Below are positions 3,577 to 12,625 of a stretch of DNA of 64,000 nt, piece by piece. Positions within the stretch are counted from its first letter, which is position 1; every line of letters starts with the position of its first letter. Both the position numbers and the translations under genes were made by a program. Under the pieces are notes generated by a model that saw only the letters and a list, made by a program, of their open reading frames with translations, was not told the origin of the DNA and made no database searches. Source of the stretch: Macrostomum lignano (lineage: Eukaryota); NCBI GenBank assembly GCA_002269645.1, contig NIVC01002277.1:1-64000 (forward strand). The letters are read 5' to 3'.

Positions 3577-6500
3577 TCAAGGCTTGCACCTGCCGGTCAT
3601 GCGCGGGTACAGGCAGACATCCCGGATGTGCTCCTGGCCGAACATCCACGTCATGAAGCGCTCAACGCCAAGTCCGTAGCCGCCGTGCGGGCAACTGCCG
3701 TATTCGCGCTATAATTAATTACACAATGCGACAAGTTACATGTGTGTTTTGCATTTTTCGATACATATCGGCAAAACAGGTATTTCGATTTTCTTGCCCA
3801 AAAGATTTTTTGCGTACCAAAAGTTCCTAATACGCTGGTCAAGAAGCTGATGATGAAAGTTGGAGACTCAAAAAATGACTCGACTCTTTTGATATCTCAC
3901 AGAGGAGAAGCAATTAGGGCTGGTTTCAATTTTGAGTCAAAAATATTAAAAAGCATGACAATGACCTTCTTAGAGGAACTGCTAAAATCCTTGACGGTTG
4001 AAAATTGAATGCAAAGAAAGAGAAAAAAATTTATATCGGGATCGACTCGCGACCTTGTAACAAGATCATGATCGTAAAAAATCGATACATATTCGTAAAA
4101 TATTACTCACCTGTTGCGTGTACCAGTAGTAGGGCGACGGGTCGATACCCTCGCGTGCGTAGCCTTTCATTAGCTCGTCGTGCTTCCAAATCCTCATGGA
4201 GCCGCCAACAATTTCGCCAACCCCGGGAATTAGAACGTCGACAGATTCGGTCACCCGGTTGTCCTCCTGGCAACGGGGCATGTAGAATGCTTTGATCTCG
4301 GCCGGGAATCGGCACAGCAGAATCGGCTCATTGATAGTGTCCGTCATTTGCCGCTCCGGAGCCTCCGGGATGTCCTGGCGTCAAATGGGGAATGCGCTTA
4401 AAAACATTTTTACCAGTAATTGAAATCTATGCGTTGTTATATTGTTTTCGATACATATCGGGTACATATAGTGCGAGTAGATAAAACAGTACTTGAGTAC
4501 ATATACATAGTCTACTATATTTAGGTGTACAGCGGCCCTGACTTTCTACTCATCAGGCATGTACACTCAAAAGTAGAACCCCTGAAACCCTCAACTAATT
4601 TTCGTGCTCAAAGCTCCAAATCAATGTGGCCCTGCACGGAATCGAACCAGGGGTCGTGTGGTATTTATCTTATGTTGCGAAAGTTGAAAAAAACTACGAG
4701 AAATTCTTTTTACTTAAAGTAGTTAATACGGCTATGCAACACTGAAAGAATCTCACATCGCCAAACTCGTAGTTTTTTCCATCAGGCCGAAGCACATTGT
4801 TCTCCTTGAGCCAGACCAGCGCGTCCGTGTAGTTCATCCGCCTGAACGGCTTCTTCGGGGCGTTGAATTTCGGGTTCACCTCGCGCAGCAGATCGCCAGC
4901 CTCTTTTAGCACCCGTTCGGACACGTCCACAATGAGATCTTCCACGCGGTCAAGCAGATCATTGTAGGTGATGAACGGGCACTCGGCCTCCAGGTGGGTG
5001 TACCTGAAGGCGATGAAGTCTCGTGTGAATGCTCGCTGGTTACACTTTAAATACTAGGTACTCAGAATCTGGTCATTATACCCAACCTACTCAAAATCTG
5101 GTCATACACCAAACCTACTCAGAATCTGGTCATACACCCAACCTACTTAGAATCTGGTCATACACCTAACCTACTCAGAAACTGGTCACACACCCAACCT
5201 ACTCAGAAACTGGTCATACACCCAACCTACTCAGAATCTGGTCATACACCAAACCTACTCAGAATCTGGTCATACACCCAACCTACTTAGAATAGAATCT
5301 GGTCATACACCTAACCTACTCAGAAACTGGTCACACACCCAACCTACTCAGAAACTGGTCACACACCCAACCTACTCAGAATCTGGTCATACACCTAACC
5401 TACTCAGAAACTGGTCATACACACAATCTACTCAGAAACTGGTAATACACCCAACCTACTCAGAAACTGGTCATACACACAATCTACTCAGAAACTGGTC
5501 AGACACCCAACCTACTCAGAATCTGGTCATGCAGCACCCCCATCCATATTCTAATCCTGGACGACAACCAACCCCACTTAAGCAATAACTCACTCGGACA
5601 GGTGGCGCCTGGTCCTGCTCTTCTCGGCCCGGTAGCTGCGAGCTACGCAGAAGCAGTCGCCAACAACCGGCAGGCAAGTCTCCAAATAGAGCTGGCTAGA
5701 CTGGGTCAGATAGGCCGGCTCTCCGTAATAGTCAAAGCTGAACAGGGTCGAGCCGCCCTCCACCTGAGTCTGCACCATGGTTGGCGGGGTCACTTCAACG
5801 TAGCCCCGATCGAACAGGTGAGACCGGAACGCGCGCATCACGTGACAGGACAATTTGACAATCTTCGAAGTATGCTCGCCCCGCAGAACCAGATGCCGAT
5901 TGTCTAGCAGCACGTCGACGTCGCTCTCGACGTTGAGCACGGACTCGACGCCGCCGGGGGGAGCCGGGCCGATCTGCTCCCAGTAGTCGGCTGTTAGTTC
6001 TACGCCGCCAGGCGCGCTGTGACCTTCGGGCACGCGAGCCAGAGTGCCGTAGACTCGGATGGAGGCCTCCTGGCTCAACAGGATGGCGTCGTAGGTTTGA
6101 CACAGGCGGTCGGCCAGCAGGCACTGCAGGAAGCCGGTGCCGTCTCGGAGCACCACGAACATCAGTGCCTTGCCCTGGCGGCGCAGCCGGTGCACCCAGC
6201 CTGATACCTGCACTCGTTGGCCAACTAGCTCGGGCGCCTGGCGCACCTGGATTGAGCGGACCGGTGCACTCACTACATTAATAAATTAAATGAGGAATAT
6301 AGTGGGGTTTGAAGGGCTACGAATGAGGAGAAGTCAAAAAGATTATCACGGAATGGGGACAAAGCTGGAAGGGGATCGCAGAATGGGGAGAAATCTGGAA
6401 GGGTATCACAGAATGGGGAGAAAGCTGGAAGGGGATCACAGAATGGGGAGACAGCTGGAATGGGATTTCACATTCGGGAGACATCTAAAAGGGGATCACA

Positions 6501-7340
6501 GAATGGGGAGAAATCTGGAAGGGTATCACAGAATGGGGAGAAAGCTGGAAGGGGATCACAGAATGGGGAGACATCTGAAAGGAAATAACAGAATGGGGAG
6601 AAATCTGGAAGGGGATCACAGAATGGGGAGACATCTGAAAGAAAATAACAGAATGGGGAGAAATCTGGAAGGGTATCACAGAATGGGGAGAAATCTGGAA
6701 GGGTATCACAGAATGGGGAGAAATCTGGAAGGGGATCACAGAATGGGGAGACAACTAGAAGGGGATCACAGAATGGGGAGACATCTGAAAGGAAATAACA
6801 GAATGGGGAGAAATCTGGAAGGGTATCACGGAATGGGGAGACAGCTGGAAGGGGATCACAGAATGGGGAGACAGCTGGAAGGGTATCACGGAATGGGGAG
6901 ACAACTAGAAGGGGATCACAGAATGGGGAGGCAATTGGGAAAAATGAAGGTACAAATGGGATTACCTTGACAGCCTGAGCCTTGGGCAGGGAAGGATCCT
7001 CGCTAATGCAGATTTTTTCGGCGGCGCGCAGATTCTCATCTCGAAGGGCCTTGTCGGCGGCCTCGCGCTTTTCCCGCTGCTCAGACTGCCGCTGCTCTCG
7101 TTCTAGCAGTTTGCGGCATTTCTTTACCTGCGACTTGGCCGCCTCCTGCCATTGCGAACCACCGTCGGGGCCTTCAACCATGACGACGGCGCTCGAGCCG
7201 CCACGGCGCAGCGCATGCAGCACCGTCTTGAAGGGCCGGGACTCTGTCCCATCGCCGCACTCGTCGCTGCCTTTCGCTTCGGAGGCGTAGAAGCGGGTCG
7301 CCGATACTTCGGTAGCCTGCGGTAGTTTCGGCGCATCTTG
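3577..7340 (-). CDS. NARS1: Cytosolic asparaginyl-tRNA synthetase; exons 7340-6966, 6246-5594, 5003-4757, 4374-4111, 3708-3577 (556 codons plus an unlocated start Met)
   Basis: All four introns are GT-AG with matching phases. Motifs: N-terminal [92 protein letters not shown]. Colinear with metazoan NARS1 as recalled. Confidence 0.96.
4524..4655 (-). mobile_element. tRNA-derived SINE copy in AsnRS intron 3
   Basis: Reverse complement has a B-box (CCTGGTTCGATTCC) and the family core GAGTGTACATGCCTGA...AGAAAGTCAGGGCCGCTGTACACC. Confidence 0.75.
5060..5530. repeat. 28-bp minisatellite (CCTACTCAGAATCTGGTCATACACCCAA), about 16 copies, filling AsnRS intron 2
   Basis: Period 28 measured (GTCAT at 5101 and 5129); lies inside intron 5004-5593. 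Confidence 0.92.
6340..6932. repeat. 30-bp minisatellite (CAGAATGGGGAGAAATCTGGAAGGGTATCA), about 19 copies, filling AsnRS intron 1
   Basis: GAATGGGGAG recurs every 30 nt; lies inside intron 6247-6965; explains spurious ORF 6290-6970. Confidence 0.93.
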
Positions 7341-7429
7341 CTGTGATCAAGACTAAATAACGATGTCTCGAAATACGGGTCTAACAGTGATTAACGACCT
7401 GTAGCAGCAACTATCACTTCCTATATTAT

Positions 7430-8150
7430 CTCCTGATATGCATCGAAAGTATTATAAACTAAATATAATAGCCTGGTAACTGTTCCTTTCTTTAATTATA
7501 CCGATATGTTTCGAAAATATCAAGGCAGTATAAGAACACAGAAAAAGCAGATCCAAATCTAGACTAGCTACCGATATGTATCGAAAGTATCTAGGCAGTA
7601 AAAGAACACAAAAAAGCAGATCCCCATCTAGACTAGCTACCGATATGTATCGAAAGTATCAAGGCATTAAAAGAACACAGAAAAAGCAGATCCCCCTCTA
7701 GACTAGCTACCGATATGTATCGAAAGTATCAAGGCATTAAAAGAACACAGAAAAAGCAGATCCCCATCTAGACTAGCTACCGATATGTATCGAAAGTATC
7801 GAGGCATTAAAAGAACACAGAAAAAGCAGATCCCCATCTAGACTAGCTACCGATATGTATTGAAAGTATCTAGACACTAAAAGAACATAGAAAAAGCAGA
7901 TCTTCCATCTAGACTAGCTACCGATATGTATCGAAAGTATATAGGCAGTAAAAGAACATAGAAAAAGCAGATCTCCCATCTAGACTAGCTACCGATATGT
8001 ATTGAAAGTATCTAGACACTAAAAGAACATAGAAAAAGCATATCCTCATCTAGACTAGCTACTGATATGTATTGAAAGTATCTAGACACTAAAAGAACAT
8101 ATAAAAAGCATATCCTCATCTAGACTAGCTACCGATATGTACGACGTATC
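7430..8150. repeat. 70-bp tandem repeat, about 10 copies, each with CCGATATGTATCGAAA
   Basis: Motif at 7502, 7572, 7641, 7711, 7781, 7851, 7922, 7993, 8063, 8133; lies between the RRM gene and AsnRS. Confidence 0.92.
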
Positions 8151-8792
8151 TTAAAACCTGGAAAATTCAAGCCTACATAGTGCTAATAAAAACTAATAAA
8201 AATTCAATAAATTAACTAACAGAACAAACTGGCAAACGTCAGCAGAAACAAGACACCAACTTAGTAACCAGGTAAGGGATAAGAAGTCAGAGAGAGAGAG
8301 ATTTATTTGCAACCTCAGTAGCAGCTTTCATACAGTTGTTAAGGCAGCAGCGCGCAGCTGTAAAGGCGGTCTTTCTACAAGTCAATCTTTCGTGAATAAA
8401 GTAATCAACTATACATAATTATAAGCCTTTAAGATAGTAGCAAAGCATTTTATTAAATCGGAAAAAGGTAATATTTTTATACAAGCGCATAAGTTAGGGA
8501 GGGCTACGTAGAGTTTTGAAATAAAAGCACATGAAGTCTTAATGACTCTTATTGCTACTGTAAAATAAATTGCTAATTTATAAAGTCAGACTGGTCCAAA
8601 TTTATGGCTAAATTGTATAAGCAGAATTATATACTAATGTTACTATTAAGGAAAAAGATAAAAGCATGATTTAATGCACTAATTAAAACGCTGGAAGATG
8701 TACTTTTGATGAAAATTAAACAGAAAATGTTTTGAGAAGATAAACTAGAAGTAGTCAATGAGATTTTAAAATCAGTCGACAGTCCAATGGAA

Positions 8793-11700
8793 TCACTGCG
8801 TTAGAGCCATGTAGAGCGGGAGGCCTTTGTAGGGTTTTCTGCAAGCAAGCACGAAAACAAAGATTAGTTTGATAATAAAGTGATGAAAACGCTTTTTCGA
8901 TACATATCGGCTTATAGTCATTTGGCTTATAGGCTTTGACACTAGTTAACTTGCAATTGGTAAACGATAAATTGTTCGATACATATCGGCGCCTAATCAA
9001 ACAGATTAGCAACACTCGGATTTTAGTGGCATCCCCAATAGTGAAATGTTACATTTTCGATACATATCGGCGCCTAATCAAACAGATTAGCAACACTCGG
9101 ATTTTAGTAGCATCCCCAATACTGAAATGTTACATTTTCGATACATATCGGCGTCTAATAAACAGGGTAGCTGAACACCGACTGTAGTAGCATTCCAATA
9201 CTGAAATGTTTTACATTTTTCGATACATATCGGCGCCTAATCAAACAAAGTAGCGACACTCGTATATTTAATTAAGTATCATGTAGTTATGCTGAAAATA
9301 TGCATTTTTCGATACATATCGGCACTCAGTCAATCAAATCGGCACATTCTATGAAGCAATAATAAACTTGCCTGTTATAACGCTTCACAAACTCGGCGGC
9401 TTGTTGTTCGTTATAAAATTTAACAAACGCCTTATAAGTGCTGGGCACTAGTCGGTACTCCTGCAAGTAGTAAGGATAGGTTAACAGTGAAAAATGAATC
9501 AATTAAAAAAATAGAAGCGTAAATAAAAAAAAACGATGAGCCAGCGGAACTCACGCAGACGGGTCCAAGCGGGTCTGTCAGCGTGGCCAAGTCCTGCTCA
9601 GTGATGCCGTCCGGGCAGTTCTCAATCCGGACGCTGGTACGGCCGCTGCTGCTTGGATAGCCGATGTTGAACGGCAACGTCGGGCCTTGTCCGGTCCGTT
9701 CGAAACTCGACGATGTCGGAGCCGCCACCGCAGCCGCCGATGCAACGGCGGGCACATCAGCGGCCAGATGATGGCGCATCGCCTCGGCGGCCGCGTAGTT
9801 GGCGCCGGCTGCGCTGCACCAGCGACGATCAGCGACACGATGCTGCGGCTGCTGCTGCGGCTGCTGACGCGGTCGAGAAGCCAGCAGGCTGTTAACAGGC
9901 TCTATAGCAGTGGCGGCAATCGGTTGGGGAGCCGGTTGACCCCACGGCAGCTCATCGTCAGCGTCGGCGCCTGAGTCATAATTATAATAATGACGGTTGG
10001 CAATGGCGCTGCCAACTTGCCCGATTGACAGCGGCTGATGCTGTTGATGGTGCTGATGATGCTGCTGAGGATGCTGAGGATGCAGCTGGCGGATCTGTGG
10101 CGGCTGCTGCTGCTGAGAATGCTGAGGATACAGCTGGCGCATCTGTGGCGGCTGCTGCTGCTGAGGATGATACGGCTGGCGCCACGGCGGCCGATGCTGC
10201 TGCTGTGGCAGCATGGCACCTCCATGCGGTCGGACAATAAAAGCATTCTTCTGCTGCTGCTGGACCTGCTTCCATGGCGGGCACTGAAATCTACATGCGG
10301 CGCCGGAACTGAAAACGGCGCCACCAGCACCACGACCAGCTGGCGCAGCGGTGGCGGCAGCAGGTGCAGAGCTGGTCATCGAATGGCTTCGAAGCCCATG
10401 AAGAATTTCTGCTTGGCGACGCTTAAGCTGCCGCTGATTATTTATTATCTGGCGTAGGTCCGCACTGGCTTGTGTTACACTGCCAGATGTTGACGGGATC
10501 TGCTGCTGATTTTGTTGCACCTCAGCGGAGCCTCTATTATTATTATTATTATCGCTTACAGTTTTGTTAGTCTCAGCCTTACTGCAACCGCTGTTGTCAG
10601 CTTCGCCTTCGTCATCATCGTTGCTAGACTCGCCAGTCAGGTCGATAAACACCGTATTTGGATCGGCTAGCGGAAATGAGTGCCGGGGAGACCGACCGTC
10701 CCCGACGCCGCCGCTACTGCTAGGCGGCAACAGGCGCTTGCGCTCGCGCCGCTGCGGCTGCACGGACCCTGGCTGATCAGCGGTTGCCTCGTCAGCCGAG
10801 GACCCAACAGCGTCGCTAGGAGCAGCTTCAGTCGACAATAATGCGTTGCTGTTAGGGGCAGTTTTCGGCGACGCGGTTAATTTAGGCTCAGTAATAGCCA
10901 AGCCTTCGCCGGCAGCGTTGTTCGCGGCCTCGTCATTACTGCTGGCCGGGGCCGGCGAAATGTCGCTCGATGTTGACAATGGCGACGAAGCGATTGACGA
11001 ATTATTGCAGTCTTCCTCGGGCAGCTCGGCAGCGATAGCTGGCGGAGATGAGTCCGATGGCGGCTCGGGGACTGCGACAGGCTGCTGCTTCTGTTGCTGC
11101 TGCTGATTGCTGACGCCTTCATCAGCTTCGGCATTAATGGTGAGGACTAGAAATATGCATTGTTGACATTTTTTATGAGCTTAAGCGTTTTGACTGGAAC
11201 TGAGACCAGCTGACGAGAAAATTGCCGGTTAGACACACTCAATAAGTGCTTCACTAGTGACAGAGCTACCCCCTCTGCTAGCTACTCTCCATCAGGACCC
11301 TCAGTGCCCCCCTCCACCCCTCCATCAGGAACCTCAGTGCCCCCCACCCCTCCATCAGGAACCTCAGTGCCCCCCACCCCTCCATCAGGAACCTCAGTGA
11401 CCCCCTCCACCCCTCCATCAAGAACCTCAGTACCCCCCTCCACCCCTCCATCAGGAACCTCAGTGACCCCCTCCACCCCTCCATCAGGAACCTCAGTGAC
11501 CCACCCCTCCATCAGGAACCTCAGTGCCCCCCTCCACCCCTCCATCAGGAACCTCAGTGCCCCACTGCCCCACCCCTCCATCAGGAACCTCAGTGCCCCA
11601 CTGCCCCACCCCTCCATCAGGAACCTCAGTGCCCCACTGCCCCACCCCTCCATCAGGAACCTCAGTGCCCCACCCCTCCATCAGGAACCTCAGTGCCCCA

Positions 11701-12625
11701 CTGCCCCACCCCTCCATCAGGAACCTCAGTGCCCCACCCCTCCATCAGGAACCTCAGTGCCCCACCCCTCCATCAGGAACCTCAGTGCCCCACTGCCCCA
11801 CCCCTCCATCAGGAACCTCAGTGCCCCACCTCTCCATCAGGAACCTCAGTGCCCCACCCTCCATCAGGAACCTCAGTGCCCCACCCCTCCATCAGGAACC
11901 TCAGTGCCCCACCCCTCCATCAGGAACCTCAGTGCCCCACCCCTCCATCAGGAACCTCAGTGCCCCCACCCCTCCATCAGGAACCTCAGTGCCCCCCACC
12001 CCTCCATCAGGAACCTCAGTGCCCCCCACCCCTCCATCAGGAACCTCAGTGCCCCCCACCCCTCCATCAGGAACCTCAGTGCCCCCCACCCCTCCATCAG
12101 GAACCTCAGTGCCCCACCCCTCCATCAGGAACTCACCCACAGCATTCGGATCCTCTTGGCTAATAATCATAGGCGATTCCGTATCTGCTTCGTCATCTGT
12201 AGAGCCAAGCAGCTCAGCCTCCTCTTCCTGGGTGAGGGAGATTTTCTTTCCGCTGGTCCCCGGGTCGCCCAGCAGGTTCAGATCGTCATCATCTTCGTTG
12301 AAGTCGAGCCGCTCAGGGGACTCGATGGCTAAACGGAATGGAATAGATGGCTACAGTGCCGGACTGAGCAACTACCAATTATGGGAGACAACAAAGTCCA
12401 CTGTTCAGCTCAAGCCGGCATGAGCAGCAACATGTCCGGAGGGCTAATAACACAACTAACTTTCACTCGACTAACAATTTCACTCACTTGCAAGTTGTCA
12501 AAGCTGCAGTCTGCATTTATCAATGGGCTAACAAGAACTAGGAGACAACTTATTAAAAATGGATTAATATTAATAATAATAATAGGAATATAGTACTCAC
12601 AGTGCCTGCTTGGCGATCTAGCCAT
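8793..12625 (-). CDS. 647-aa low-complexity (acidic/Q/P-rich) protein with one C-terminal RRM, POLDIP3/ALYREF-like fold; exons 12625-12601, 12328-12137, 11146-9555, 9460-9372, 8838-8793
   Basis: Phase-consistent splicing (1,1,0,2), total 1944 nt. RRM: TSVRIENCPDGITEQDLATLTDPLGPVCEYRLVPSTYKAFVKFYNEQQAAEFVKRYNRKPYKGLPLYMALTQ*. The last intron needs a GC donor (AG|GCAAGT at 9371). A likely 5'-UTR exon ends at 12788 (CAG|GTAAGT). Confidence 0.8.
8890..9325. repeat. About 81-89 bp tandem repeat, 6 copies of TTTCGATACATATCGG, inside the GC-AG intron
   Basis: Motif at 8898, 8977, 9058, 9139, 9221, 9310, in opposite orientation to the 70-bp array. Confidence 0.85.
11290..12135. repeat. 27-34 bp C-rich minisatellite (CCCTCCATCAGGAACCTCAGTGCCCCAC), about 28 copies, filling intron 2 of the RRM gene
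   Basis: Visible tandem units inside intron 11147-12136; explains several spurious Pro-rich ORFs. Confidence 0.93.

Follow-up and report, generated by a model that had tools for sequence, protein, structure and literature searches.

In Macrostomum lignano, a free-living flatworm, the gene for asparaginyl-tRNA synthetase (AsnRS) lacks its own start codon ahead of the conserved N-terminus of the enzyme, and the initiator AUG is in all likelihood donated by the spliced leader (SL) through trans-splicing. The gene lies on the minus strand of a 64,000-nt stretch of DNA (assembly GCA_002269645.1, contig NIVC01002277.1, positions 1 to 64,000; hereafter the window). The initial annotation had already proposed that the SL supplies the AUG, and this stands as the best-supported reading, given an SL that ends in ATG, public gene models that begin without methionine right after AG dinucleotides, constraint on the N-terminal residues and the lack of an upstream exon with a consensus donor. 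Both the joining of the SL at these AGs and the initiation of ribosomes on the SL AUG are what we infer from these observations.

The gene was mapped by tblastn with human NARS1, which served purely as a probe and aligned from 7292 to 3580 in five blocks of conserved order. As assembled in the window, AsnRS comprises five exons joined across canonical GT-AG introns into a 556-codon open reading frame (ORF). Exon 1 spans 6966–7340 (with 7316 as its start if acceptor B, described below, is used), has the donor GTAATC and is supported by the match to the deposited protein PAA48555; exon 2 (5594–6246), exon 3 (4757–5003), exon 4 (4111–4374) and exon 5 (3577–3708, including the stop codon TGA at 3579–3577) are supported by the tblastn blocks and by the same match, the window model and PAA48555 being identical from residue 9 onward. 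The Pfam domains of the model are AsnRS_N (PF20917, 3e-23, residues 32–119), an OB-fold anticodon-binding domain (PF01336, 1.1e-12) and a class II (D/K/N) catalytic domain (PF00152, 1.9e-74). Its best database match is UniRef A0A1I8G0B8 from M. lignano, with 100% identity over the full length, followed at 83% by a protein from a Logan RNA assembly, and all remaining matches are at or below 64%; among the top matches, identity to animal enzymes annotated as cytoplasmic AsnRS is 61–64%. Because of this three-domain order and of its orthology to animal NARS1, the gene is identified by its sequence as a cytoplasmic asparaginyl-tRNA synthetase of class IIb, NARS1 type. The M. lignano genome holds four AsnRS copies, which are 93–100% identical to each other, the locus designated L005 being the most divergent, and each of which has an intact five-exon ORF and canonical GT-AG introns. 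A separate irregularity concerns the database protein A0A1I8G4P8 (P0124), in which residues ~197–220 form an internal out-of-frame segment; exon 2 read in a different frame yields this segment, which probably derives from an indel error in an older assembly.

The AsnRS frame is closed upstream by an in-frame TGA (7347–7349, minus strand), kept in 4/4 genomic copies, after which the minus strand reads TCA CAG and then CAA GAT GCG, the C at 7340 being codon position 1. Not until 7179–7181 (minus strand) does the genome offer an in-frame ATG, which is residue 54 of the model and falls within AsnRS_N, and a conserved 24-residue N-terminal AsnRS motif (7224–7295, minus strand) is encoded 5′ of any in-frame genomic ATG. 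From the TGA at 7349 to an AAG at 7229 (about codon 40), the frame contains neither an ATG nor a near-cognate codon (CTG, GTG, TTG, ACG, AAG, AGG or ATH), so that non-AUG initiation cannot rescue the conserved motif. Just past the first of two candidate acceptors (acceptor A, below), an ATG at 7334–7336 (minus strand) lies in frame +1 and opens an overlapping 70-aa ORF (7124–7336); splicing at acceptor B would remove this ATG as part of the outron. Two further out-of-frame ATGs, at 7252 and 7216, precede 7181, in addition to 7336 when acceptor A is used. The position of the closing TGA, the phase-0 AG at 7342–7341 with 7340 as the next base, the out-of-frame ATG at 7336 with its 70-aa ORF and the placement of the conserved motif (7295–7224) upstream of the first in-frame ATG had all been described in the initial annotation and were all recovered at the same positions.

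An ATG-free run of 56 codons is not unusual by itself, and the case for an absent genomic start comes instead from homology, which places coding sequence 5′ of the first ATG. The motif GSD..GDG...PFKT, common to animal AsnRS, is encoded 5′ of the ATG at 7181, and in other metazoan AsnRS 10–20 residues precede the Y-x-S-E motif. Metazoan cytoplasmic AsnRS of the NARS1 type and the M. lignano enzyme are alike in the order of AsnRS_N, OB-fold and class II core; however, orthologues in other phyla have their own ATG 10–20 residues before Y-x-S-E, whereas the M. lignano gene has none.

A second species adds to this comparison. The contig L001 is a 1,934-nt RNA contig from Logan run SRR30276804, assigned to a related Macrostomum-like flatworm, with 83% amino-acid identity to the M. 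lignano enzyme. Over the 36 codons that run through the first in-frame ATG, 13 are identical in the two species, 14 differ synonymously and nine non-synonymously, and the differences are distributed 6/6/20 over the three codon positions, with no indels and no stops. Such third-position clustering in an alignment free of indels and stops is the signature of translated sequence, and by this comparison selection at the protein level constrains the residues encoded upstream of that ATG. In L001, homology ends abruptly 30 nt from the 5′ end of the contig, right after a phase-0 AG (AAAAG); 12 nt upstream of this AG the frame is interrupted by a TGA, and no ATG occurs between the two. The anatomy seen in M. 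lignano AsnRS thus appears conserved, at the level of sequence, in a related Macrostomum. The 30 nt upstream of the AG are non-leader sequence and gave no significant alignment with M. lignano; they would represent unspliced precursor (outron).

Translation could instead begin inside exon 1, either at the ATG at 7181–7179, so that residues 1–53 would be missing, or at a codon other than AUG, the upstream frame then being 5′ untranslated region. This ATG is the first in-frame one in the genome, and the gene caller likewise started nearby on the related contig (P0002). The aminoacylation activity of AsnRS resides in the OB-fold and catalytic domains, both of which would be retained intact by a product starting at 7181. 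Nevertheless, we regard an internal start as unlikely, considering that the 35 codons upstream of this ATG show the coding-type conservation described above, that they encode the start of Pfam AsnRS_N with its universally conserved GSD..GDG...PFKT, that near-cognate codons are lacking upstream of the motif, and that the out-of-frame ATGs at 7252 and 7216 (and 7336 with acceptor A) come before 7181.

The favored alternative, initiation on the SL AUG, requires a trans-splice acceptor in phase 0, and two candidates lie 24 nt apart on the minus strand. Acceptor A (7341–7342) reads TCACAG followed by CAA, and acceptor B (7317–7318) reads CCGCAG followed by GCT. The AG at 7342–7341 had been pointed out initially and was rightly placed; the second phase-0 AG at 7318–7317 had been missed, and that account was therefore incomplete. 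Four AGs lie between the stop codon and the motif, and phase 0 is shared by two of them; the mere presence of an in-frame AG is therefore statistically unremarkable and expected by chance. The TGA and both AGs are kept in 4/4 genomic copies, acceptor A being CAG in three of them and a weaker AAG in L005, and acceptor B being unchanged in all. Each acceptor deviates at one position from the enriched motif [T/C]TNCAG.

Public gene models bear on these two sites, as all seven M. lignano AsnRS models lack an initial methionine. The three UniProt/WormBase ParaSite models (A0A1I8G0B8, A0A1I8G4P8 and A0A1I8HLB2) begin with QDAPKLPQ at codon 7340, immediately after acceptor A, and omit the S-Q that a longer transcript would permit, which implies that their evidence begins at 7340–7342. 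The four NCBI Mlig_3_7 models (PAA48555/PAA59318, PAA60633 and PAA52419) are flagged “partial” and have their first codon at 7316, immediately after acceptor B. In the Mlig_3_7 annotation, transcript 5′ ends were derived by the TBONE pipeline from peaks of mapped, leader-trimmed SL reads (PMC5730564). The neighboring RRM-domain gene serves as a positive control: in locus L003, its model begins exactly at the G of TTATTCCAG, a perfect fit to the published trans-splice acceptor motif, and continues with AAATGG. Since that model starts on an acceptor G, Mlig_3_7 5′ ends can sit on trans-splice sites, and by the same logic the Mlig_3_7 AsnRS transcript starts at G 7317. Hence, two annotation sets both put the mRNA 5′ end on a phase-0 AG, but on different AGs. 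The acceptor used would be 7318–7317, 7342–7341 or both, and either would bring the SL AUG in frame.

A search with the first 250 aa yielded no M. lignano RNA-derived AsnRS fragment starting with methionine, the matches coming only from other phyla at 56% identity or less. Against the exhaustive representative set, exon 1 matched N-termini of distant AsnRS and a few giant proteins made of repeats, and nothing else. No flags that mark individual genes as trans-spliced were found in the supplements of PMC5730564, PMC5816591 and PMC8629364, and “Mlig030197” received no mention in the literature searched. A junction pattern made of the SL 3′ end, 0–24 nt and the exon gave no match in JGI metagenome contigs. 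The giant proteins that match the AsnRS N-terminus in the exhaustive representative search are 1,200–7,500 aa long, of unassigned origin, and contain 3–12 repeated modules each; they share with AsnRS the motif Y-x-S-x-x-G-S-D-x-x-G-D-G-x-x-x-x-P-F-K-T (residues ~14–57; window ~7300–7170), a resemblance that hints at a fold or motif common to the beginning of AsnRS_N and a repeat present in other proteins.

One SL has been described in M. lignano, a 35-nt sequence, CGGTCTCTTACTGCGAAGACTCAATTTATTGCATG, that ends in ATG; about 30% of genes receive it, among which genes conserved with human are enriched (PMC8629364). The possibility that the organism lacks an AUG-terminated SL, on which the initial proposal would have failed, is thereby set aside. 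At its 3′ end, this leader reads ...CAATTTATTGCATG, with the terminus ...TTGCATG, and Wiberg et al. (PMC10468722) noted the terminal ATG of the Macrostomum SL as a translation start codon. Within the window, no SL RNA gene was found, and an Rfam scan of the window was also empty. The sequence features of the class of mRNAs initiated on an SL AUG are found together at AsnRS: an AUG-ended SL, a phase-0 AG past a stop codon and no genomic in-frame AUG ahead of the conserved N-terminus.

According to the mechanism that we propose, the AsnRS pre-mRNA would receive the SL by trans-splicing shortly after the in-frame TGA, at 7318–7317, at 7342–7341 or at both, generating the junctions ...UUGCAUG|GCU ACC GAA... 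(7317/7316) or ...UUGCAUG|CAA GAU GCG... (7341/7340). The leader AUG would be the first AUG of the mRNA and in frame with exon 1, and translation from it would give full-length AsnRS with an intact AsnRS_N domain. With a U at −3, the SL AUG stands in a weak context. Since ribosomes that skip it would meet out-of-frame AUGs before reaching 7181, efficient full-length synthesis should require the leader AUG, and AsnRS production would in this way depend on trans-splicing. A far more extensive proposition, namely that SL-AUG initiation of AsnRS is obligate and genus-wide in Macrostomum, that the two acceptors give rise to two N-terminal isoforms, one of which would begin M-ATEV, that all copies depend on trans-splicing for a full-length product and that the gene possibly sits in an operon downstream of the RRM gene, is advanced only tentatively, and we doubt that it holds as a whole.

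Alternatively, an upstream exon with its own ATG could be cis-spliced to 7341 or 7317, the public models being merely incomplete. A candidate mini-exon, ATGAAAGCTGCTACTGAG followed by GTTGCA, is present in phase at 8314–8331 (minus strand) and is kept in the paralogs, where L005 differs from it by one substitution. It had been put forward initially as a weak candidate: the element and its phase stand, and its coordinates, given as 8330–8313, are corrected here to 8331–8314. In total, 18 phase-0 ATG...GT mini-exons can be drawn between 8792 and 7343, but none is followed by the consensus donor GT[G/A]AG (motif from PMC8629364), the donor of the candidate at 8331–8314 included. The two independent RNA-informed annotations, with seven models, contain no upstream exon, this mini-exon among those absent, and all of their models are still 5′-partial. 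Moreover, the candidate lies between the two AATAAA hexamers of the upstream gene, ~100 nt past the first and 6 nt before the second, and it may belong to the 3′ untranslated region of that gene; its retention tells little, the paralogs being so similar to one another. A cis-spliced start is consequently judged quite improbable. Lastly, although every database entry is labeled partial or fragment, the locus is hardly conceivable as a 5′-truncated pseudogene or an assembly artefact, in view of the four copies with intact five-exon ORFs and canonical introns, the exact match of the window model to a deposited protein, the strong purifying selection relative to the related species and a protein search that returned no other cytoplasmic AsnRS cluster of M. 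lignano.

Upstream of AsnRS, an AT-rich stretch from 7343 to 8448 (minus strand), delimited by the AATAAA of the upstream gene (8454–8449) and by the acceptor, presumably serves as the outron or intergenic region; it contains the second AATAAA of the upstream gene (8307–8302) and a 643-nt tandem array of 9.2 copies of a 70-nt unit (7499–8141). The upstream gene is the RRM-domain gene, on the same strand, with its last coding exon at 8793–8839 (stop codon at 8795–8793). The gap between this gene and the AsnRS acceptor is ~0.95–1.1 kb, which shrinks to ~300–450 nt once the tandem repeat is subtracted. In M. lignano, operons have been delineated by a same-strand neighbor, a repeat-adjusted distance of less than 1 kb and a trans-spliced downstream gene (PMC8629364), and the RRM-domain gene and AsnRS may form such an operon, with AsnRS in the downstream position.

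Two observations pertain to the RRM gene itself. Its model starts, at window ~12628–12623 (minus strand; L003 689–694), on the G of the acceptor described above, followed by AAATGGCT. SL addition at this acceptor would place the leader AUG 2 nt upstream of the gene's own ATG and out of frame with it (AUGAAAUGG), so that on the SL-joined RRM mRNA ribosomes must either pass over the leader AUG or start a short overlapping upstream ORF on it, unlike in AsnRS. Within the span of the gene, at 11287–12132, lies a C-rich tandem array of ~27 copies of a 28-nt unit, with a GC content of 0.65 and a GC skew of about −0.6.

Use of the 3′-terminal AUG of a flatworm SL as the initiator methionine was shown by Cheng et al. 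(2006; J Biol Chem 281:733), as reported in PMC9851317, and the AUG property has been stated for all reported flatworm SLs (PMC12582326, PMC5832876). The mechanism has thus been known in flatworms since 2006, and AsnRS is an ordinary further example of it, with no new mechanism. The Schistosoma mansoni SL-AUG mRNAs of Cheng, Cohen, Ndegwa and Davis (2006), as described in PMC9851317, PMC12582326 and PMC5832876, resemble M. lignano AsnRS in their AUG-ended SL, phase-0 acceptor and absence of a genomic AUG before the conserved N-terminus. On the other hand, M. lignano AsnRS belongs to another lineage (the free-living Macrostomorpha), is another gene, has two acceptors 24 nt apart and is a case predicted from sequence. 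Studies of the M. lignano SL (Wudarski et al., 2017, PMC5730564; Ustyantsev and Berezikov, 2021, PMC8629364) deal with the same organism and leader and with an enrichment of conserved housekeeping genes, and SL trans-splicing with a terminal ATG regarded as a start codon extends to M. cliftonense and M. hystrix (Wiberg et al., 2023, PMC10468722); neither the AsnRS gene nor a count of SL-AUG-dependent ORFs appears in PMC5730564, PMC8629364 or PMC10468722. AsnRS also resembles the slORFs found with slORFfinder (PMC9851317), ORFs that exist only in the trans-spliced mRNA and take their start codon from the leader, but the SL-initiated ORF of AsnRS encodes a canonical conserved protein rather than an alternative or overlapping ORF.

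Some points of the AsnRS case deserve mention: an essential aminoacyl-tRNA synthetase is concerned, all copies share the feature, and two in-frame acceptors are available. A housekeeping aminoacyl-tRNA synthetase of a free-living, early-branching flatworm would join the genes for which the leader AUG seems to be required, an example that supports the view that the conserved terminal AUG of flatworm SLs is functional. In practical terms, the SL AUG would explain the Met-less M. lignano AsnRS models (fragments in UniProt, “partial” entries at NCBI), which could be repaired by adding the SL AUG in front of the sequence that follows the trans-splice site; many other 5′-partial models in Macrostomum and other flatworm genomes can probably be corrected in this way.

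The window contains other features around AsnRS. A near-palindromic 15-mer, CCGATATGTATCGAA (core CGATA-TG-TATCG), occurs at 17 sites with at most one mismatch between 2040 and 9322 (among them 2040, 3757, 4447, 7571, 8896 and 9308), located in AsnRS introns 3 and 4, in the downstream flank and in 70-nt and 81-nt tandem arrays. It is absent from the remaining ~55 kb of the window, and shuffled sequences give none. Single copies have unrelated flanks, and the motif is also present in the paralogous loci L002–L005, where its copy number varies. AsnRS introns 1 and 2 consist largely of tandem arrays of their own, of 19.5 copies of a 30-nt unit (6345–6930) and 16.6 copies of a 28-nt unit (5059–5530), respectively; on the gene strand, the intron-1 unit holds CCTTCCAG, which creates ~20 matches to the acceptor motif [T/C]TNCAG inside the intron. 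Finally, ORFs with a bHLH-like segment, split by an intron, lie on the plus strand at 385–1682 and probably represent, judging from their translation, a gene for a bHLH transcription factor that is transcribed towards AsnRS.
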